Counted from the whole stretch's first letter, positions 14,067-26,449 are shown. The stretch is DNA of 63,795 nt, filler included, from Pelomyxa schiedti (GCA_020536535.1; 13 parts of 13 records of this genome joined end to end with filler, not necessarily neighbours in it); one strand, 5' to 3'. Numbers and translations: made by a program. Notes: generated by a model from the letters alone, not told the origin.

Positions 14067-14743
14067 TCGACCCTGAAATCACCTTCTTTGAAAACCTGCG
14101 AGCCTCTTCAAGCACTGAGAAGGGAGGACATGAAGGCACTTTATCCTCACAAAAGGGTCACAACACAGTCGTGTGCATTGGGTGTGATGGTGTTGTTTCA
14201 TCAGGCGTGTGCCCTGAGAAGTGCAAAGTGGTTGGGACGGAGCAGCTCTTCCGAATTGGAGTGACCAGTGAAATTGAACTTGTTCCGTTTGACAATGTTG
14301 GAAATCCCTGTTCTCCCATTGATCCTGTCATCTCTGTGGTGCCCTCTTCGTGCAACATCAGTTCGTTTTTCCTGTTCTTTCTGCTTTCGAACACTCACTC
14401 CAAAATCCAGGTGTGAAAAGGAAAGCTGCATTCAGTGACTCTTCTTCTTCTTCTGCTGCTGCTGCTTCACAACCACCAGCAGCAGAGCCTTCATCAGCAT
14501 CGTCACTTCCGACACCAGTTTCGTTCATAATTTCAGTTGCACCCACTGAATCAGGGAAACACCATGTTTCCATCAGCTTTGGTTCCGCACAGTGCTTGAA
14601 AGTTGAGTTTCGTGCACATGCGAGGGCTTGTGCAACCAACAGCAAACTCACGGCTCTTTGCAATCGGCTGTCATATCCAACTGACTTTGTTGTTGGTGAC
14701 AATGCCAACAAAGGAACCCCATGTGCCGAGATATCTCTTGTGG
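14067..14743 (+). CDS. TRIM-like gene, copy 0 (internal fragment, filamin/Ig region)
   Basis: Near-identical to 16251-16921 and 19938-20611. Cut by the contig start and by an N gap. Confidence 0.8.
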
Positions 14744-14843
14744 NNNNNNNNNNNNNNNNNNNNNNNNNNNNNNNNNNNNNNNNNNNNNNNNNNNNNNNNN
14801 NNNNNNNNNNNNNNNNNNNNNNNNNNNNNNNNNNNNNNNNNNN

Positions 14844-17800
14844 GCCAGCGGAGACAACAACGCGAGGCCCATGGGGGAGGGCGGGCCCTTCGACGGGGTG
14901 CCGCGGCGGCTGGACTGCCTGCACTCGTTCTGCACCGGGTGCCTGCGTGGCCTCATCGCGGCACCCCCACGAGGGGGCGGCGGTCCCGGTTGCACAACTA
15001 CTACCGCGGCAGCGAGCAGTGAGAGCAACAACAACAAGAGCAAGAACAAGGGGAGCGAGGAGAAGGGAGGCGCGGAGTGCCCATTGTGCGGGCTCGTGAC
15101 TCCAATCCCTGACTGCGGTGAGTATATTTTGTGTTGGTGTTTTTTTGTGCGCCGAGGAGGAGCGATTGTGGTTTGTGGGTTTGGTTTTTGGGGAACTGAA
15201 CTTGGTTCTTTTTTTATTATTTTTGGGGGGAGCAGGTCTGAGAGGATTCTTGGTCGATTTTCATATTGTGAGGCAGATAGAAGTGTCCCAGCCCATGTGC
15301 AACCAGTGCGAAAAGAAAAACAAGCAGATTCCAGGCATTGCGTGGTGTCCCCAATGTGCCAAATTTATGTGCAAGGAGCACAAGACCTTTCACGACGGCT
15401 TCATGGAGGTTAATTCCCTCATCACTTCAAACTTCCACCTCATTTTATTCTCTTTCCTCTTTTGGACCAATTCACACAGGATCACATCACTGTCCCAGCA
15501 GGAAACAAACCTGAGGGAGAAGGCAAAATCGTACCACAAAACAACAAACCAATTTTTTGTGAGAACCACCCAGATCAAGAACTCACTTTCTTATGCAGCT
15601 GCAAAAAGGTCCGAGCAAGCAGGTGGCTTCATTTGTTTATTAACTTGACTGCAGATTATCTGCAGAGACTGTGCTATTCTCTCACATCGTTCGTGCACCC
15701 AACCAGTTGTTGCTCTCGAAGCAGTCAAAGAAAACCTCAGTGAAATTGAACAACTCACCAAAAATATCAAATCTCGTATTCCTGAGGTCAATGAAGGTTT
15801 GTCCTCAAGTATATATGACAAGGAGCGAACTCATCCAAAGGAATTTCATCACTTGAGCGAACCTTGGCACTTGTGGATGAAAACGCAAAGAAAACCAAGA
15901 AGGAAATCGAAATGCACATGAGCTTGCTGCATGAAGCAGTGAACAACCGGCACCTTGCATTGAACAAGGAAGTTGAAGAGTTGTCAAGTCAAAAGATCGC
16001 TGCTCTTGTTGCCCAGAAAGAACGAATCTCAATGGTATCTATATTTATAGATGGAGATGCAAACGCGCAAGCCACAATTTCTTTCTTTGGCTCACACGAA
16101 ACAAGGTGGGAATTCAAATGACACAGGCAACAAAAGTTGCAGACACGCTGACGGAATGGAGTCCCGTTGAAGTTCTCCTCACACAAACCAAGATCAAGGA
16201 ATGTGCAAACCACCTTCTTCAATTTCCATCTTCATCCATGGTTCCTGTTGTCGACCCTGAAATCACCTTCTTTGGAAACCTGCGAGCCTCTTCAAGCACT
16301 GAGAAGGGAGAACATGATGATATCCCATCCTCACAAAAGGGTCACAACACAGTGATGTGCATTGGGTGTGACGGTGTTGTTTCCTCAGGCGTGTGCCCTG
16401 AGAAGTGCAAAGTGGTTGGGACGGAACAGCTCTTCCGAATTGGAGTGACCAGTGAAATTGAACTTGTTCCGTTTGACAATGTTGGAAATCCCTGTTCTCC
16501 CATTGATCCTGTCATCTCTGCGGTGCCCTCTTCGTGCAACATCAGTTCGTTTTTCCCGTTCTTTCTGCTTTCGAACACTCACTCCAAAATCCAGGTGTGA
16601 AAAGGAAAGCTGCATTCAGTGACTCTTCTTCTTCTGCTGCTGCTTCACAACCAGCAGCAGCGGAGCCTTCATCAGCATTGTCACTTCCGACACCAGTTTC
16701 GTTCATAATTTCAGTTGCACCCACCGAATCAGGGAAACACCACGTTTCCATCAGCTTTGGTTCCGCGCAGTGCTTGAAAGTTGAGTTTCGTGCACATGCA
16801 AGGGCTTGTGCAACCAACAGCAAACTCACGGCTCTTTGCAATCGGCTGTCATATCCAACTGACTTTGTTGTTGGTGACAATGCCAACAAAGGAACCCCAT
16901 GTGCCGAGATATCTCTTGTGGATGCTGATGGGGAACCTTATTCACATGGTGATGTTACTCCCGTTCTCACTGCGTGGCTTGTCACTCAAAGAGGAGACAA
17001 GATTCCACTGAGCACTCACCTGTCACAAGGAGCCAGGCCTGGTGTTCTCAGTGTGGCACTCGGTGTCGATCTCCAGCAGCAACAAACCATCACAGCCGGC
17101 AATGTGGAAGTTCAAGCAGCACTGACTGATGGCAACCTCACAGGGAGCCCCCTCAGAGGGATGCCAGTGTGGAAGGGTCCTTCTGCCACCAAGTCGACTC
17201 TCGTTGTCCAGTTGGCCAACACAACCAAAGCCACGGCCACACTGCAGCTTCGCGATGCATCCGGCGCGAACATGACAGCCGAAGCCATCGAGGCCATGCA
17301 AGTCAGTGTCACAGCCACTTGCACCGTGGCCAACAAGCCCGTCACCGCCAAGGTGGCAGCCGACACAGCCAGCGGCGGCAGCTTCGCGGTCGAGTGCGGG
17401 CCCTTCACGGAGTTCGGGGAGGCCACAGTGGTTGTGCAAGTGGCGTCGCCGATCGGCGTGGAGGGGTCCGACTCGCCGCCTTCGTTCACTGTGTCGGCGC
17501 GTGCTGCGATACAGAGGGACCTGTCGTGGATGGAAACGACGGACCAGTGTAGGGGTTTCAGGCAGTGCACGTACAACCCCAGGGTGAGGTTCGCCGTGGC
17601 CAAGGACACGACGTGGGACAAGGACCGCGTGTATGACTGCCCCCCGGGTTACCACTGGGCATCAACCGCCGAGGGTAAGGCCATATTCACAAGTTCCTCT
17701 CAAAACACTGTGTATGCATACTACGGTCAGGGAGGGTGGTCTGGCTACGAGTGGGGTGGGAAGACACGGTACTACTTCAGGTTCAGTGACTCAAAGCAGA

Positions 17801-17901
17801 CAAATGCGTACAAGCATGCAGGCAACCACGAAGAGTACCTAGTTGGAGAAAACGGTGAGACTTCAACCTTCGCGGGGATTGTGTGCATCACTGACACGTA
17901 G
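14844..17901 (+). CDS. TRIM-like E3 ligase, copy A: RING, two B-boxes, coiled coil, 3 filamin/Ig-like repeats, C-terminal CLec-like domain (5' end in gap)
   Basis: RING half RLDCLHSFCTGC...CPLC. B-box1 CNQC..WCPQCAKFMCKEHKTFH. B-box2 CENHPDQELTFLCSCKKIICRDCAILSH. Coiled coil (KEIEMHMSLLHEAVNNRHLALNKEV). Ig repeats CPEKCKV..FDNVGN, CATNSKL..VDADGE, SATKSTL..RDASGA. Stop at 17901. Confidence 0.85.
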
Positions 17902-18647
17902 TTAACACCACGGTACCTCCTGCTTTATCACAGTCCTCCTACTCATCGGGAATTATCCCCCAGACTTCCATAACATAGGCCCAGGCTGCAGCGCTCCTCT
18001 ATGGCTGCAATAACTTCGATTTTTATCAGTATGAATACAAAAAAGATAACACAGATGGACCACCCAAGTTGTTGTGGGAAGTCGTTCACTTATTGGAGAA
18101 TAGCCATAATTATGGTTGTTCTCATATGTTATGTTTGCTTATATGTGTGCTTGTGTGGGATGTGTAGTTTGTTGTGTGACGGCAAAGCCAGAGAACAAGA
18201 ACGAGATAAAGAAAGAGATTCTATTATTTGTTCTGTTTGTTTGTTGTTAGTTTTGATTTGTAAGGTTTGAGTCGATTCTAAGGTCGAGGAGTGTGTCGGG
18301 CTGAGAAGGACTGGTAGATTTCCGCGAACTTGATTTCCTAAGTTGTCAGTCCGAGTGTTCAGCAGGTCTCGGTGGTCGTGCTTGCAGAGAGTTTGCTTGT
18401 GTATTCTACAGAATCACACATATATTACAACTTTGTATTGTGTAAATAGTTAAGACAAAGTCAGAGGGTTTATAAGGGTCGGTTGAGCATGAACTCGCTG
18501 GTTCCTGTGAATGGTCATTCTTAGTTGGCCAACTTGGCGCAAGCCATCATCACTCCTCACAATTTCCGTCGCCCGCGGCCACCCGTCCTACAAGGCAATC
18601 ACACCAATTGGGAAAAGATACGGAAGAGGGCTCGAAGCAACAGACAC

Positions 18648-21594
18648 ATGAACAGCGGAGCAGGGAGCACAACAACCACGGAGGACAACACACACTTGTG
18701 TTGTTCCATGTGCCACGGCCACTTCACGCGGCCTCCCACAACATTGCTCGCCTGCGGTTTCGCACCCGCTGCCCCGACTCCCAACCAACCGCCGGCCAGC
18801 GGAGACAACAACGCGAGGTCCATGGGGGAGGGCGGGCCCTTCGACGGGGTGCCGCGGCGGCTGGACTGCCTGCACTCGTTCTGCACCGGGTGCCTGCGTG
18901 GCCTCATCGCGGCACCCCCACGAGGGGGCGGCGGCCCCGGTTGCACAACGACTACCGCGGCAGCGAGCAGTGAGAGCAACAACAACAAGAGCAAGAACAA
19001 GGGGAGCGAGGAGAAGGGAGGCGCGGAGTGCCCATTGTGCGGGCTCGTGACTCCAATCCCTGACTGCGGTGCGTGTGTATTAATATTGTGATTTTTATTG
19101 CGAGTTTCACATTTCCTTTTTTTATTATTATTTTTGGGGGAGCAGGTGCCAGAGGATTCTTGGTTGATTTTCATATTGTGAGGCAGATGGAACTGGCTCA
19201 GTCAAACAAAAACACACTGACTCCAGAAAAACAAATTTTCTGCGAGAGCCACCCAGATCAAGAACTCACGTTGTCATGCAGCTGCAAAAAGGTCCGAGCA
19301 AGCAGGTGGCTTCATTTGTTGTCAGTAACTTTACTGCAGATTATCTGCAGAGTTTGTGCAAGTCTCTCACATCGTTCGTGCACCCAACAAGTTCTTGCTC
19401 AAGATGCAGCCCAAGAAAACCTCGGCGAAATTGAACAACTCTCCAGAAATATCAAATCTCGTATTCCTGAGGTCAACGAAGGTTTGTTCTCAGTTTTCGA
19501 GATGACCAGGTCTCAACCCATCCAAAGGAATTTTATCACTTGAGCGAACCTTGGCACTTGTGGATGAAAACGCAAAGAAAACCAAGAAGGAGATCGAAAT
19601 GCACATGAACTTGCTGCATGAAGCAGTGAACAACCGGCACCTTGCATTGAACAAGGAAGTTGAAGAGTTGTCAAGTCAAAAGATCGCTGCTCTTGTTGCC
19701 CAGAAAGAACGAATCTCCATGGTATCTATATTTATAGATGGAGATGCAAACGCACAAGCCACAATTTCTTTCTTTGACTCACACGAAACAAGGTGGGAAT
19801 TCAAATGGCACAGGCAACAAAAGTTGCAGACACACTGACGGAATGGAGTCCCGTTGAGGTTCTCCTCACACAAACCAAGATCAAGGAATGTGCAAACCAC
19901 CTTCTTCAATTTCCATCTTCATCCATGGTTCCTGTTGTCGACCCTGAAATCACCTTCTTTGAAAACCTGCGAGCCTCTTCAAGCACTGAGAAGGGAGGAC
20001 ATGATGGCACTTTATCCTCACAAAAGGGTCACAACACAGTCGTGTGCATTGAGTGTGACGGTGTTGTTTCCTCAGGTGTGTGCCCTGAGAAGTGCAAAGT
20101 GGTTGGGACGGAGCAGCTCTTCCTAATTGGAGTGACCAGTGAAATTGAACTTGTTCCGTTTGACAATGTTGGCAATCCCTGTTCTCCCATTGATCCTGTC
20201 ATCTCTGTGGTGCCCTCTTCGTGCAACATCAGTTCGTTTTTCCCGTTCTTTCTGCTTTCGACGAACACTCACTCCAAAACCCAGGTGTGAAAAGGAAAGC
20301 TGCATTCAGTGACTCTTCTTCTTCTTCTTCTGTGGCTGCTTCACAACCAGCAGCAGCGGAGCCTTCATCAGCATCGTCACTTCCGACACCAGTTTCGTTC
20401 ATAATTTCAGTTGCACCCACCGAATCAGGGAAGCACAATGTTTCCATCAGCTTTGGTTCCGCACAGTGCTTGAAGGTTGAGTTTCGTGCACATGCAAGGG
20501 CTTGTGCAACCAACAGCAAACTCACGGCTCTTTGCAATCGGCTGTCATATCCAACTGACTTTGTTGTTGGTGAAAATAAAGGCACCCCATGTGCCGAGAT
20601 ATCTCTTGTGGATGCTGATGGGGAACCTTATTCACATGGTGATGTTACTCCCGTTCTCTCTGCATGGCTTGTCACTCAAAGAGGAGACAAGATTCCACTG
20701 AGCAGTCACCTGTCACAAGGAGCCAGGCCTGGTGTTCTCAGTGTGGCACTCGGTGTCGATCTCCAGCAGCAACAAACCATCACAGCCGGCAATGTGGAAG
20801 TTCAAGCAGCACTGACTGATGGCAACNNNNNNNNNNNNNNNNNNNNNNNNNNNNNNNNNNNNNNNNNNNNNNNNNNNNNNNNNNNNNNNNNNNNNNNNNN
20901 NNNNNNNNNNNNNNNNNNNNNNNNNNTTCGCGATGCATCCGGCGCGAACATGACAGCCGAAGCCATCGAGGCCATGCAAGTCAGTGTCACAGCCACTTGC
21001 ACCGTGGCCAACAAGCCCGTCACCGCCAAGGTGGCAGCCGACACAGCAGCAGCCAGCGGCGGCAGCTTCACGATCGAGTGCGGCCCCTTCACGGAGTTCG
21101 GGGAGGCCACAGTGGCTGTGCAAGTCGTGTCGCCGAGCGGCCTTGGGGGGTCCGACGCCCCGCAGTCGTTCACTGTGTCGGCCCGTGCTGTGATACCCAG
21201 CAGGGACCTGTCGTGGATGGACACCACGGACTTCTGCCACGGATTCCGGCAGTGCACGTACAACCCCAGGGTGAGGTTCGCCGTGGCCAAGGACACGACG
21301 TGGGACAAGGACCGCGTGTATGACTGCCCCCCGGGTTACCACTGGGCATCAACCGCCGAGGGCCAAGCCGTATTCAAGCGCGGCTACAGCGACGACACTG
21401 GCCCGAACGTGTACTATGGCGAGGGAGGGTGGTCTGGCTACGAGTGGGGCGACAAGAGACGTTACTACTTCAGGTTCAGCGACTCGAAGCAGACAGCGGC
21501 GTGCAAGCATGCGGGCGAGTGTGACATGCACATGGTGGAGTGCACCGACAGCATTGCGCACTTTGCAGGGATTGTGTGCATCACTGACACGTAG
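18648..21594 (+). CDS. TRIM-like E3 ligase, copy B: RING, one B-box, coiled coil, 3 filamin/Ig-like repeats, C-terminal CLec-like domain
   Basis: ATG 18648. C3HC4 RING CSMC...CLHSFCTGC...CPLC with low-complexity inserts. B-box CESHPDQELTLSCSCKKIICRVCASLSH. Otherwise collinear with copy A, introns included. Confidence 0.85.
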
Positions 21595-21976
21595 TTACTC
21601 CGCGTCCAGTACCCCACTCATCGTCTGTTCAACCACAACGCGGATAGAGAAACCGTGGTCGAGTCTTAGTAACACCAGTTAAGAATACTTGTTGCCAAAG
21701 ACGGACATTGGGTTTTTGTTACTGCAAACTTGCCCCTTGGAGGTAGCCAAATCGTTCCTAGTACAGATTACAGCAGAGGCACACATTGGAATCCTGTTTA
21801 GAAAGATATCCGCACTGAGAATCCACAAGGAGGCCTTCTTCGTTCCCTTGATTCGAAACAAAAAAAAAAAAAAGAAAAACCATCATAACAGAGAAAACGA
21901 AGGACAAGCAGCAACTGTACACTTTTTTCCAATTCAACAAAACATCCGATCACCGATCAGCAAAGAGAAAGAGAAG

Positions 21977-24900
21977 ATGAGCACCACACCCACTACCCCA
22001 GCGACCGGCGCCACGCCCGTGACCGCGACAGCAACAACCGCTGCCCCGCCAAAGCCGGCGTCTACCGCAAAGCGCGACAAACTCACCGCCATCGAGAAGT
22101 CGATACGAGATGAGTGGGAGGCCGCACACCTCCATGAAGCGGACGCGCCAGTTGTCGCTAGTAGTAGTACTGGCGGGACCGACGCGGCGTCGCTGCCCCC
22201 GAAGTTCTTTGCAAACTTCCCGTACCCTTACATGAATGGGTATGGCGCCTCCCTTTTGGTTTTTTGGTGGTATTTCCATTTTGGTTTGACTTGCTCTTTT
22301 TTCCTCTCTTACATCTTTTTTTTTTTTTTTTTTGTAGGCTTCTGCACCTTGGGCACACTTTTACTGTAACCAAGGCAGAGTTTGCAGTCAGGTATCAGAA
22401 ATTAAAGGGAAAGAACGCTCTATTCCCATTCGGTTTCCACTGCACAGGAATGCCCATCATGGTAATTAACTGGCATTTCTAAAATCTCAATTAATGTTGT
22501 CTTGTACAGGCTTGCGCCAATAAGCTTAGAGAGGAAATAAGACAATTTGGTTGTCCACCAGTTTTCCCAGGTTCAATTTTTTATTGGTGAAAATGATTTT
22601 CCTCAAAGTCCCTCTGTAGAAGTAGTACAGAAAGCAGAAGAAGACGCCAGAAAGGCAGCAGAGGAAGCTAAGCGACTAGCTGAAGCACCAGCTGCATCTC
22701 CTGCGCCTCCACCAACAACTCCCGCACCTGCACCATCTAAGAAAAATCAGAAAAAAAAACCTGCCACACCAGCAGCCCCTAAGCCATCTGCAGCATCCAG
22801 TGTTGACCCTACTCAATTTCATTCTCGAAAAGTATCTATTCTAGCTCCAGTTTCGTTTTTTAAGTTCTGTGAAGGTAAAAGTCGCCCAGAAAGGTGGCAA
22901 GCGTCAATGGGAAATCCTTCTTAGCAATGGCATTCCTCCTGAACAGATACCTTCCTTCCAAGATCCACTAACTTGGCTGAAGTACTTCCCACCACAGGGA
23001 CTTGTGAGTCTCCTCCACTCCCCCCTACGAGCCTTGCTTTCTAACATTACTGGTTTCAGACTGACCTCAAGTTAATGGGCGTAGCAGTCGACTGGAGAAG
23101 ATCATTCATCACCACAGAAGTTAATCCCTTCTATGACAGTTTTGTTCAGTGGCAGTTCAAGAAACTACAAGCCATGGACAAGCTGGAGTTCGGGAAAAGG
23201 CCTGCAGTTTATTCTCCAATAGACAAGCAGCCCTGTGCAGATCACGACAGATCATCAGGAGAGGGTGTCCTACCTCAAGAATATGTTGCAATCAAACTCG
23301 AGCTTGTCCCGCCATTCCCCGCACCACTGGCCTCACTTCAAGGGAGAAAGATTTTCCTTGTTGCCGGAACTCTGCGCCCAGAAACAATGTACTGCACATT
23401 CCCAACGTTTTACGTCCTCCCCGAACTAATCTTCTTTGCAGGGTTGGCCAAACAAACTGCTGGATACTGCCAGAAGGAGATTATGGCGCTTTTGAGATGA
23501 AAGACAATGAAATCTTCATCTGCACTCAGAGGGCCGCCAAAAGTTGGATTAGTGCCCTGCTTGCAAATTTAATCACAACGGAAAATAGATTTCTCTTATC
23601 AGGAGATGACTCCAGCTGCTGGTGTTGTTGTGTGCCTTGCAACACTTAAAGGTTCTGACCTCGTTGGTGCCGCTCTGAAAGCCCCTCTTTCTCCTTACCC
23701 TGTTGTCTACACGCTCCCGATGACAACAATTAACCCGGATAAGGTATCCTTATTCATCTCAGATTGCCTGAACAAGTTCTTATATTCAATAAAGGGTACG
23801 GGGGTTGTGACAAGTGTGCCCAGTGATTCGCCCGATGACTACATGAACTTCATGCAGCTTAAATCAAAGCCAGAGTATAGGAGGAAACTTGGAGTACGGG
23901 ACGAATGGGTACGCCTCCTTTAAGGGATTTCTTTCTATTAAATTGCCACAGGTTGAACCCTTCGAAATCATTCCCATAATTGACGTGCCTGGACTTGGCA
24001 AAAATGCTGCCGAGTTTGTTTGTAACAAGCTCAAGATTAAAAGCCCTCACGACACACAAGCACTTGAAGAAGCAAAGGGCGAAACATATCTGAAAGGGTT
24101 TTACACCGGAAAAATGCTTGTGGGTGCTTACGCTGGAAGGTTTTTCAGCTCCCTCTGGATTTTTTTTTTTTTTTCCTAAATATCTTCTAGACCTGTTCAG
24201 GATGCCAAGCCACTAGTGAGAGCAGACTTGATAACCTCAAAGCAAGCGTGTGTCTACCATGAACCTGCAAGCAAGGTAGCCGTCATTACCTCGGGTATTC
24301 GTCCAACGCATTCAGGTTATGTCACGCTCTGGAGATGAATGTGTTGTTGCCCTTTGTGATCAGTGGTTCCTGAAATATGGAGATGCCGAGTGGAAACGAC
24401 AAACAATGGAGTAATTCGACCTTATTCCCTGCCCTGAAAACTGATAGCCTACAGGCTAATGAAGAATATGACACTATACCACAGCGCAAGTGATGACATC
24501 ATGTCAAAAACTGTTGAGATTTTTACTCACTGGGGCTGCAGTCGCAGCTTCGGACTGGGTACACACCTCCCTGTGGACAAGCAGTATGTCATTGAGAGTC
24601 TAAGTGACAGTACAATTTACATGGCTTATTACACAGTTGCGCACCTTCTCCAAGGTAGGGCAATGTTTTCGAGTTCACACGTTTAACATTTCACTTCAAG
24701 GTGGTAACCTGGAAGGTACAGCTTCTCCACTGGGAATAAGACCGGATCAGATGACGTTTGAGGTGACAAACATATTCTGAACAGCAACATCTCAAATTTT
24801 GATTAGGTGTGGGAATACATTTTCAGTGATGGTGAACTGCCAGCCACAACTATCCCCAAAGAACACCTTGAGAGAATGCGCGCGGAATTCAGATACTGGT

Positions 24901-26449
24901 ATCCATTTGACTTGAGAGTATCTGGAAAAGATCTACTCAGCAATCACCTTGTCTTCTGCCTGTATAACCACGCTGCCATTTTCCCAAATGTACAATTTTA
25001 GTAATAACCCCCTCTTTGTAACACAACAACAGAAAGGGCCAAAAGCTTTCAGGGCAAATGGCCATCTTCTGATTGACAATGAGAAAATGTCGAAATCTAC
25101 TGGCAATTTCCTGTCACTCAGAGAAGCAGTCGATTTATACACTGCTGGTGTGATTCTAACTCCTCACTCAACACACTTTTCTAACCATGCTCTTTCCTTC
25201 TAGATGGCATGCGCATTGCCCTTGCAGATGCAGGTGATGGTATTGATGATGCAAACTTCCTGAGAAGCTCTGCTGATGCAAGTCTGCTGAAGCTTCACAC
25301 ACAACTTGAGTGGATAGAAGTACGTTATTTTTTAACAGTGTATCAATCTCACGGACATATAACCAAAGGATACTCTGGCTGATTCTGCCGTTTCCAAACT
25401 CGCGGATGGCCCATGTGACAAGTTCCATGATTTTGTGTTCGAAAGTCAGATGAACAAATACATTACTGAAGCTGACCAAGCTTATCAAAAGTATGCAGAG
25501 TTAATCTGTTTCAAACTTCTGTTTCTCAATTGCTTCCAGACTTAACTTCCGTGAAGCGTTACTTCACGCACTGTTCGACTTACAAGCTGCCCGTGACCAG
25601 TACCGTTCTGCAATGGAGGAGCTGTCAATTCCTCTTAAGCGGTGTCTCATTATGCGTTACATTGAAGCACAGGCGCTGGTCATGGCTCCTATTGCTCCCC
25701 ACTTTGCTGATCACATATGGAAGCGAATTCTCAAGCGCCCAGGGTTCGTATGGCGTGATGGACACTGGCCAGAAGCAGGCCCAGTGGACGAACTTGTCCT
25801 GGCGAAGAGCGCCCACCTTGAAAAAATTGCTTCTGACTTCCGGCAAGCAATCAAAGAGCACTGCACGCCTAAGAAGCGGAAGGCCCCAGCCAAACCCACG
25901 ACTGAGGGATCAACTACAGAAGCCAGCAGTCCTGCAGTAGAGGTCATTCCCTACCCACAAGTCGCTGAAATAGTTGTCTCTACTGCCTTCCCACAATGGC
26001 ACGTGAGAACCATTGAGATCCTTAATTCTGCATATGACGAGGTGAGCTTCACTTAATTCAGTATCACTTCTCCCAACTGTCACACAGACAACCAAACAAC
26101 TTCCATCCACTGCCAAGATAGCACCACTGATTACCGCGGATCCCCTTCTCAAGAAGAACACCAACAAAATCATGGCCTTTGTTGCTTTCATGCAGGTTGA
26201 AACTGGCCTTATCTGTTAGTCACATTACCTTTCCATTCTAATCCTTCCGTTCAGGAGGCGGTGGCAACCAAAGGCCGGTCAGCTCTGAGCCTGGACCTTG
26301 GGTTCAACGAATTCCAGCTCATACAGGAGCACCTTCCCTACCTCTCCAAGATAATCAAGATACCTACGCTTGCTGTAAGCACCACTGACAAGCCTGACGA
26401 AATAGCCAAGCTCGTACCTGGCAAACCTGCCATCACCTTCAAGTCCTAA
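21977..26449 (+). CDS. LARS: Leucyl-tRNA synthetase, cytosolic type, about 20 introns
   Basis: After splicing: [14 protein letters not shown] (HIGH motif), [56 protein letters not shown] (CP1 editing domain), [31 protein letters not shown] and KMSKS at about 25084. Confidence 0.97.

Follow-up and report, generated by a model that had tools for sequence, protein, structure and literature searches.

Tandem paralogs of a putative TRIM-type E3 ubiquitin-ligase gene with a C-type-lectin-like C-terminal domain in the archamoeba Pelomyxa schiedti

In animals, tripartite motif (TRIM) ligases with variable recognition domains play a central part in innate immunity. The closest described counterparts of the genes considered here belong to the animal TRIM subfamily C (TRIM2, TRIM3, TRIM71 and TRIM45), in which the arrangement of RING, B-boxes and coiled coil (RBCC) is combined with a filamin domain and usually with NHL repeats. 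Here we describe a tandem array of TRIM-like genes of Pelomyxa schiedti, an anaerobic archamoeba whose genome was assembled from amplified single cells (PMC8887013). The window, that is, the whole stretch of DNA analysed, consists of 63,795 nucleotides from 13 joined records of assembly GCA_020536535.1 (52.4 Mb, 5,337 contigs); contig C700 (21,756 bases) occupies places 14067-35822 of the window, and the genes are located at 14067-21594. Our preferred reading, which we hold with moderate confidence, is that these are tandem paralogs of a TRIM-type E3 ubiquitin-ligase gene, whose C-terminal C-type-lectin-like (CLec-like) domain, in the following called the head, is the target-binding module, with variable stretches that have been kept different between the copies. 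According to a survey of the TRIM family (Marin 2012, PMC3503706), none of the animal TRIM classes listed carries a CLec-like domain, and outside animals only TRIM37-like genes are reported. A filamin-bearing archamoeba TRIM with two B-boxes and a new recognition domain would therefore widen the known range of TRIM architectures. The gene is mentioned neither in the genome study (PMC8887013) nor in the study of the endosymbionts of P. schiedti (PMC10579272).

The locus shares features with several known systems. The predicted order RING, B-box1, B-box2, coiled coil and filamin-type Ig repeats is that of subfamily C, the RBCC part matches structures of TRIM28 and TRIM3, and NHL-bearing TRIM2/3-like proteins are 21-23% identical. 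In contrast to subfamily C, which has one Ig repeat, the Pelomyxa protein has three, it lacks NHL repeats and ends in a CLec-like domain, and its host is an amoebozoan. Like TRIM5alpha and TRIM21, it joins an RBCC part to a C-terminal recognition domain that varies in a few loops, and it occurs as tandem paralogs; unlike them, the head is CLec-like and not a beta-sandwich SPRY domain, positive selection is not demonstrable, and there are three head types only. With respect to the head itself, Fib_succ_major (PF09603), Lcl_C/DUF1566 (PF07603) and the Link modules of LYVE-1 and CD44 provide the closest predicted or solved structures. In these families the motif G-W-R-L-P-x-x-x-E-W forms a strand followed by helix alpha1, as does the corresponding motif of the head. 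Unlike Fib_succ_major and Lcl_C, however, the head has no Pfam sequence match and a conserved signature of its own, and the structural similarity reaches a Z score of at most 4.7 and a TM score of about 0.5. A further parallel are the cullin-3 adaptors of the BTB-Kelch, MATH-BTB and KCTD types, since metagenomic BTB-BACK and BTB_2 proteins carry the head at the position of the substrate-binding domain; the Pelomyxa scaffold is a RING-based TRIM, whereas the BTB fusions are found in other organisms. Finally, the variable proteins of diversity-generating retroelements (DGR; Mtd, TvpA, TaqVP) are weak structural matches, and their variation is likewise near the C-terminal end of the CLec domain. 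Unlike these, the Pelomyxa locus has no template repeat, no nearby reverse transcriptase and no adenine-specific pattern, and the differences between its copies include indels and look like old alleles.

Three tandem copies, as expected from the sequence-only reading, are borne out: a partial copy 0 (14067-14743), copy A (14844-17901) and copy B (18648-21594). The unit is repeated in the same orientation with a period of 3.69 kb, as found in a direct-repeat search. The public model P0151 (876 aa, 'tripartite motif-containing protein 2/3') is copy A and maps exactly, with seven exons. A paralog C on contig C702 corresponds to P0003 (938 aa, 'hypothetical protein Pelo_8958'). The analysis covered the sequence of the window as single exons, and copy A and paralog C also as these two public models. 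The features of the locus are as follows.

14067-14743, plus strand: copy 0 (partial), consisting of the end of the linker/filamin-1 exon, an intron of the 50-nt class and the start of the Ig exon; truncated by a gap of N.
14744-14843, no strand: assembly gap 1, a false join.
14844-15119, plus strand: copy A exon 1, 3' part of the RING (CLHSFCTGC ... CPLCG), the 5' part being lost to gap 1; exact match to P0151 1-83.
15238-15408, plus strand: copy A exon 2, B-box1 (CNQC...CPQC...C..H); P0151 84-140; no counterpart in copy B.
15480-15608 and 15655-15798, plus strand: copy A exons 3 and 4, encoding B-box2, which is interrupted by an intron, and the beginning of the coiled coil; P0151 141-231.
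15843-16037 and about 16105-16544, plus strand: copy A exons 5 and 6, coiled coil, linker and first half of filamin-type repeat 1; P0151 232-442.
16545-16594, plus strand: last intron of copy A, 50 nt, GT..AG, absent from RNA contig X4 record 21.
16595-17511, plus strand: copy A last exon, Ig part, with the remainder of filamin-type repeat 1 and repeats 2 and 3.
17512-17901, plus strand: copy A head, a CLec-like domain of 129 aa, and stop.
18150-18420, no strand: dispersed repeat of about 270 nt within the spacer between copies A and B.
18648-19070, plus strand: copy B exon 1, start codon and complete RING with long low-complexity loops, from the open reading frame (ORF) and its translation.
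About 19148-19291, 19338-19483 and about 19528-19720, plus strand: copy B middle exons, placed by landmark peptides, without B-box1, with intact B-box2 and coiled coil.
19792-20231, plus strand: copy B linker/filamin-1 exon, flanked by introns of 71 nt (19721-19791) and 53 nt (20232-20284), both GT..AG.
20285-21201, plus strand: copy B last exon, Ig part, containing gap 2.
21202-21594, plus strand: copy B head, a CLec-like domain of 130 aa, and stop; four patches unlike those of copy A.

Transcription and splicing are seen in Logan contigs from two single-cell RNA-seq runs of the genome study. Three GT..AG introns are removed, namely 16545-16594 in copy A as well as, in copy B or one resembling it, 19721-19791 and 20232-20284, and the reading frame is maintained over the spliced junctions. 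One RNA contig (X4 record 21) covers 16150-16544 and is spliced onto 16595; another (X3 record 20) begins at 19577, joins 19720 to 19792 and lacks both copy B introns. Head A is transcribed, as a third RNA contig (X3 record 17) spans 17340-17897. All exons of copy B are open, and head B together with its downstream flank is reproduced exactly by DNA contigs of runs X1 and X2.

The architecture consists of RING, one or two B-boxes, coiled coil, three filamin-type Ig repeats and head. The TRIM-like assignment made from the sequence alone is supported by comparison with solved structures: residues 106-352 of P0003, comprising B-box1, B-box2 and coiled coil, match the crystal structure of the TRIM28 RBCC (E = 1.5e-9), the match to a TRIM3 structure has E = 3.7e-6, and B-box2 of TRIM28 alone (2yvr) is matched at E = 0.008. 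The alignment to TRIM28 and TRIM3 runs through residues 250-375 of P0003, such that the coiled coil follows the B-boxes and the canonical order is kept. In databases, the relatives found at 21-24% identity are NHL proteins of the TRIM2/3 type and TIF1 proteins. All eight zinc ligands of the RING are present in copies B and C (C-x2-C ... C-x-H-x2-C-x2-C ... C-x2-C). The RING matches are weak, with Pfam E-values of 0.002-0.02 below the cut-off (for example zf-C3HC4 in copy B, E = 0.002) and E-values of 0.05-0.8 against the PDB; the sub-threshold Pfam scores are explained by the long low-complexity loops that separate the ligands. The match to zf-B_box (E = 0.011) is likewise below the cut-off. 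Both B-boxes are found in copies A and C, and copy B has B-box2 alone; in a search of the whole genome, the B-box1 exon is found in copies A and C only. An in-frame loss of about 270 nt (19178-19213, compared with 15238-15608 in copy A) removes B-box1 from copy B and fuses the peptide VRQMELAQ straight to the peptide preceding B-box2. The proposed filamin-type Ig repeats receive weak but consistent support: the Ig region matches Pfam Filamin at E = 0.021 and 0.094 (16 and 14 bits, with a cut-off of 26.9), and the top Foldseek matches of its structural model are the Dictyostelium filamin rod (E = 2.7e-11) and repeats Ig 3-5 of human filamin A.

The head is a member of a large domain family that has lacked annotation until now and that is found mostly on extracellular proteins of bacteria and eukaryotes. 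A search profile built from the five genomic heads retrieves 470 cluster representatives at E <= 1e-3, and 295 at E <= 1e-10, from 1.84 billion proteins. Its characteristic conserved sequences are W-M-x-T-x-D-x-C-x-G-F-R-Q, G-G-W-S-G-Y and F-R-F-S-D-S; a strand and the helix alpha1 after it are formed by the motif P-x-G-[YW]-H-W-A-x-x-x-E, and the variable region lies before the last strand. The AlphaFold2 (AF2) model, computed with an alignment of 122 sequences, has a predicted local distance difference test score (pLDDT) of 97.1. A Foldseek search of this model against the PDB yields a best E-value of 0.86, and an exhaustive structure aligner finds 46 PDB chains with Z >= 2, nearly all of them folds of the C-type-lectin-like domain (CTLD) superfamily. 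The best match is the Link module of LYVE-1 (Z = 4.7); the others include further Link modules, C-type lectins, invasin, intimin, pertussis toxin S2/S3, FGE, EgtB, DGR variable proteins and the C-terminal domain of Legionella Lcl. The closest structural clusters of the ESM Atlas are Fib_succ_major (TM 0.50-0.54 over 99-117 residues), and the language-model neighbours include Lcl_C and InvE_AD. The models thus support a CLec fold class for the head, not homology, since the structural scores are weak. Scans with Pfam and NCBIfam find no family that covers the head, neither PF09603 nor PF07603 matches any of the head-bearing proteins scanned at E <= 0.1, a search with PF09603 gives no locus in the whole Pelomyxa genome and none from control genomes, and a sequence search of the PDB with the head profile returns a chance match alone (E = 0.37). 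The CLec-like fold near Fib_succ_major and DUF1566 that the sequence-only reading had suggested is therefore supported as a fold class; by sequence, the head does not belong to these families. Being large, well-folding, covered by none of the Pfam or NCBIfam models and strikingly widespread, the family merits a description of its own.

The proteins that carry the head are diverse. In extracellular or surface contexts, the bacterial protein P0002 has a signal peptide, two heads and PEP-CTERM, P0013 combines the head with myxobacterial cysteine-rich repeats, and in P0027 the head is found on a Big_9 lipoprotein. P0001 carries seven tandem heads, and its close relatives, about 1,400 residues in length, share 46-60% identity with head C; one of them, P0183, is encoded by a metagenome-assembled genome of the Myxococcales and has repeats that are 53-60% identical to the head. 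Further heads are found on Dicty_CTDC-repeat proteins and on giant oomycete adhesins that are annotated as cadherin or EGF (Saprolegnia, Aphanomyces, Pythium, Thraustotheca). In the sponge Corticium candelabrum, the C-termini of three Ig-superfamily proteins (P0191, P0192, P0195) are 64-67% identical to head C. Because identity is this high across domains of life, the sequences suggest that the head has spread horizontally.

We note that the head is also found repeatedly at the C-terminus of E3 scaffolds, which supports the proposal that it is a recognition module. It follows a B-box with or without RING in P0028, P0048, P0065, P0140 and P0147, a KCTD-type BTB_2 domain in P0039, P0046 and P0127, and BTB-BACK in P0148 and P0139. 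In P0048 it is accompanied by a Filamin repeat above the cut-off (E = 1.2e-10), in P0140 by TIG. Among the 109 heads of the alignment that are not linked to an E3 scaffold, cysteine occurs in 61-77% at positions 13, 43, 74 and 125. The cysteine at position 74 is found in none of the 13 E3-linked heads, compared with 66 of the 109 others (Fisher p = 1.7e-5), a loss that would fit a reducing compartment. From the recurrent joining of the head to three types of E3 scaffold and from the loss of cysteine, a portable target-binding module is predicted. A tree of the 122 heads does not separate a single origin of the E3-head fusion from several. The gene for P0065 (RING, B-box, head) is intronless and located on metagenome contigs of 24.7% GC (L006, L007), which are densely filled with ORFs without Pfam matches and may derive from a giant virus or an AT-rich protist.

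The comparison of copies A and B reveals a mosaic. That both copies are almost identical over some 2 kb, as described from the sequence, is true of 14844-15043 and of about 15838-17420 (92-100%), but not of the B-box region, where about 270 nt are missing in copy B. Identity is 98-99% in the RING exon, 78-91% in the B-box region, 85-86% in 15640-15837 (compared with 19325-19524), 92-100% from the coiled coil to Ig repeat 3, 82-89% in 100-nt windows of the head, and 63% in the last 100 nt. The four variable patches of the head that had been pointed out from the sequence, and the invariant scaffold strings between them, are all present in the translations. The patches are 12-66 nt long and 50.7% identical between A and B, compared with 95.4% for the scaffold of the head and 96.0% for the Ig part of the last exon (Fisher p = 3e-25, with patches delimited after the differences were seen); at the protein level, heads A and B are 75% identical. 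Within the patches, paralog C is about as distant from both copies (A-C 58%, B-C 56.5%) as they are from each other. Outside the patches, identity is 95-96% for A-B and 61-80% for A-C, with B-C about as A-C.

Estimates according to Nei and Gojobori give dS = 0.061 and dN = 0.028 (nonsynonymous-to-synonymous ratio, dN/dS, 0.45) for the Ig part of A and B, and dS = 0.473 and dN = 0.193 (0.41) for their heads; the ratio for the heads is 0.25 for A-C and 0.35 for B-C. A dN/dS above 1, which would mark a diversifying receptor, is thus not measurable, with overall values of 0.25-0.41; no ratio is given for the patches, as their silent sites are saturated. Among codons with unchanged amino acid, silent differences between A and B occur in 6 of 15 codons in the patches, in 10 of 74 in the head scaffold and in 9 of 246 in the Ig part, and all 10 scaffold differences are located at most 6 codons from a patch. 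Because the patterns of silent sites and of identity agree, the patches are best regarded as old blocks in a recently homogenised gene. As far as the sequences tell, this mosaic points to gene conversion with retention of diverged segments, and not to a recent burst of replacements. The patches coincide with the high-entropy columns of the family (2.97 versus 1.91 bits, p = 8e-8), so that variation is confined to variable positions of the family. At other family-variable columns, A and B are identical even at silent sites, and divergence therefore does not simply track low constraint. Head B keeps 17 of 17 near-invariant residues and scores 179 bits against a hidden Markov model (HMM) of the family built without Pelomyxa sequences. 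Its last patch (21493-21558; C-K-H ... E-C-D-M-H ... E-C ... A-H) contains three histidines as well as three cysteines, the latter missing from heads A and C; it may form a metal site or reflect drift.

The repertoire of heads in Pelomyxa is small. Genome-wide there are three TRIM-linked types (A together with a near-identical fragment on contig C5193, B, and C), and the RBCC scaffold is confined in a genome search to C700, C702 and a few small fragments. A fourth head follows a fibronectin type III (FN3) domain in a different gene (P0007; locus L005 on contig C628, minus strand, 1360-1839); it is 40% identical to head A, and its insert at the position corresponding to patch 4 is longer. The assembly yields no patch donor cassettes, and the head B sequence otherwise occurs there only as A, C5193 and C. 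A DGR-like or cassette-based diversification was considered and rejected: there is no further copy of head B and no nearby template repeat, and the differences include indels. With three TRIM-linked types, one FN3-linked head and no dN/dS above 1, the terms 'hypervariable' and 'diversifying system' used in the sequence-only reading are not sustained; the family is tiny and resembles a group of ligases that differ in target specificity more than a large hypervariable immune system.

In the mechanism that we propose, the coiled coil would dimerise the protein, the head would bind a target, and the RING would recruit a ubiquitin-charged E2, with the bound target or its surroundings becoming ubiquitinated. 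The head would thus occupy the place of NHL, PRY-SPRY or MATH domains in animal TRIMs, and several lineages would have recruited it onto intracellular E3 scaffolds. Through gene conversion, the bulk of the unit, including the introns, would be held at about 96% identity between A and B, while four stretches of the head would have stayed as diverged as those of unrelated paralogs. Retention of the copies for different binding specificities is the most likely cause. In this sense the Pelomyxa cluster is a compact case of gene conversion opposed by the retention of variable stretches.

Several observations weigh against this interpretation. The sequences and contigs show the architecture, the transcription and splicing, the fold class, the mosaic and the recurrent fusion of head and E3 scaffold, whereas E3 activity, cytosolic location, the binding of ligands by the patches and a selection for patch retention are inferred. 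The Pfam matches of the Pelomyxa proteins to RING, B-box and Filamin are all below the cut-off, the AF2 model of the Ig region is all-beta but of low confidence (pLDDT 53.6), and the similarity of the head to CTLD structures is weak, both in the Foldseek search and in the score of the LYVE-1 match. The E3-linked heads may share ancestry, in which case the cysteine comparison lacks independent events. Head B has no RNA contig, and the spliced RNA contig assigned to copy B has 9 mismatches in its final piece and may stem from copy 0. The join from A to B crosses a dispersed repeat, and the patches were delimited post hoc, once the differences had been seen. The mosaic is not specific to the head either, because a second diverged block (15640-15837) extends from the latter half of B-box2 into the beginning of the coiled coil. 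With three to four sequences, selection is inseparable from relaxed constraint combined with chance boundaries of conversion tracts.

According to an unlikely but credible alternative, A and B are ordinary young or homogenised duplicates with permissive patches, whose divergence itself blocks conversion, so that selection for different specificities is not required, and copy B is perhaps drifting towards loss of function. The patches are indeed the least constrained columns of the family, the second diverged block and the in-frame loss of B-box1 are located outside the head, head B is without RNA contig, and overall dN/dS is below 1. A drifting copy B is, however, difficult to reconcile with the open frame of its head, the complete set of near-invariant residues and the high score against the family HMM, and with exons that are all open and a B-like transcript that is spliced. 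Permissive patches alone would leave the identity of A and B at the family-variable columns outside the patches, silent sites included, without explanation, and the A-B distance in the patches equals the distance to C, which requires long retention. Very improbable, by comparison, is an artefact of assembly or haplotypes, in which the single-cell co-assembly would have placed alleles, or chimeric products of multiple displacement amplification (MDA), head to tail, and the apparent tandem would be a single locus with divergent haplotypes. The use of amplified single cells (PMC8887013), the two gaps of N, the repeat with at least 158 candidate copies at the join, a DNA contig that leaps from copy B to copy A, and several small unplaced contigs that are 92-97% identical to parts of the unit would all be in keeping with such an error. 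Yet the regular period of three copies in the same orientation, the unique sequence that copy B runs into, leading to an aminoacyl-tRNA synthetase gene, the recurrence of the order spacer, then RING exon, on two overlapping contigs (C4411 and C3096), and the independent Logan contigs of two runs that match head B and its flank exactly make it unlikely; copy B is moreover structurally unlike A in lacking B-box1, and patches of 12-66 nt within otherwise identical sequence are not producible by chimeric joins.

A different matter is the function that the heads would serve. The proposal of a diversifying intracellular immune receptor and E3, whose heads mark viruses, ingested bacteria or cytosolic symbionts in convergence with TRIM5 and TRIM21, shares all the evidence for our preferred reading of tandem ligases with a target-binding head. 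It draws additional support from host biology: P. schiedti harbours two bacterial and one archaeal endosymbiont, two of which, Ca. Syntrophus and Ca. Methanoregula, are free in the cytoplasm (PMC10579272). As prokaryotes crowd the cytoplasm of the host, possible ligands are readily available, and an immune or symbiont-policing role is possible. CLec-like folds typically bind glycans or surfaces and are the variable scaffold of DGR proteins, and balancing selection acting on a receptor would be expected to leave ancient patch alleles in place, as here. Against it are the three TRIM-linked head types with a scaffold limited to C700, C702 and small fragments, the lack of a measurable dN/dS above 1, the absence of patch donor cassettes from the assembly, and the silence of both published studies about the gene, and we regard it as unlikely. 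A bolder version, in our view quite unlikely, is that a domain normally borne by surface proteins of bacteria, oomycetes and sponges was captured, perhaps more than once, by intracellular protist E3 scaffolds of the TRIM, BTB-BACK and KCTD types and gave rise to a new class of cytosolic lectin-like E3 receptors, such that the Pelomyxa copies, maintained by balancing selection against gene conversion, ubiquitinate prokaryotic surfaces to police symbionts or clear escaped prey. If true, this would constitute TRIM-based cell-autonomous immunity outside animals.

With respect to the assembly, copy 0 is related to copies A and B by two direct repeats (D1, D2) at 83-98% identity. Contig C4686 is 100% identical to 14067-14187 and carries copy 0 further upstream into the coiled-coil exon. 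The left flank of gap 1 is located in the middle of the Ig exon of copy 0, the right flank in the middle of the RING exon of copy A; because the two flanks correspond to different sections of the repeat unit, about 1.9 kb are lost here, and ORFs that span this false join are artefacts. The small contigs C5193, C3096 and C4411 probably represent unplaced sequence of this kind. C5193 is a head fragment with 96.5% identity to head A; C4411 and C3096 overlap by 114 nt at 100% and jointly contain the spacer and a RING exon that is 92% like that of copy B. Gap 2 (20827-20926) lies inside the Ig part of the last exon of copy B and preserves the frame, as the equivalent stretch of copy A is 112 nt long, and both 112 and 100 are 1 modulo 3. 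An RNA contig extends 41 letters beyond 20826 into this gap, and the 30 letters shown are those of copy A 17137-17166, which agrees with a continuous sequence in frame. In run X2, one DNA contig links copy B at 20664 to copy A at 16975, with 7 differences from copy A; it is either a graph artefact between repeats or a further hybrid copy.

The repeat in the A-B spacer (18150-18420) has at least 158 candidate copies genome-wide at 73-90% identity, and the depth of DNA contigs across it is 1000-1900. A segment of 59 nt (18162-18220) is shared by RNA contigs that end in poly(A). The repeat looks like an element of the short interspersed (SINE) or miniature inverted-repeat transposable (MITE) kind, and it may have mediated the tandem duplication. 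A reading of the spacer as non-coding RNA was rejected, with zero Rfam or tRNA matches across the piece. Downstream of copy B, a multi-exon gene on the plus strand (21689-26100) codes for a class I aminoacyl-tRNA synthetase, with a Pfam match to Anticodon_1 at 25613-26053 (E = 6.9e-8). Judging from its N-terminal peptides, it may be a cytosolic leucyl-tRNA synthetase.

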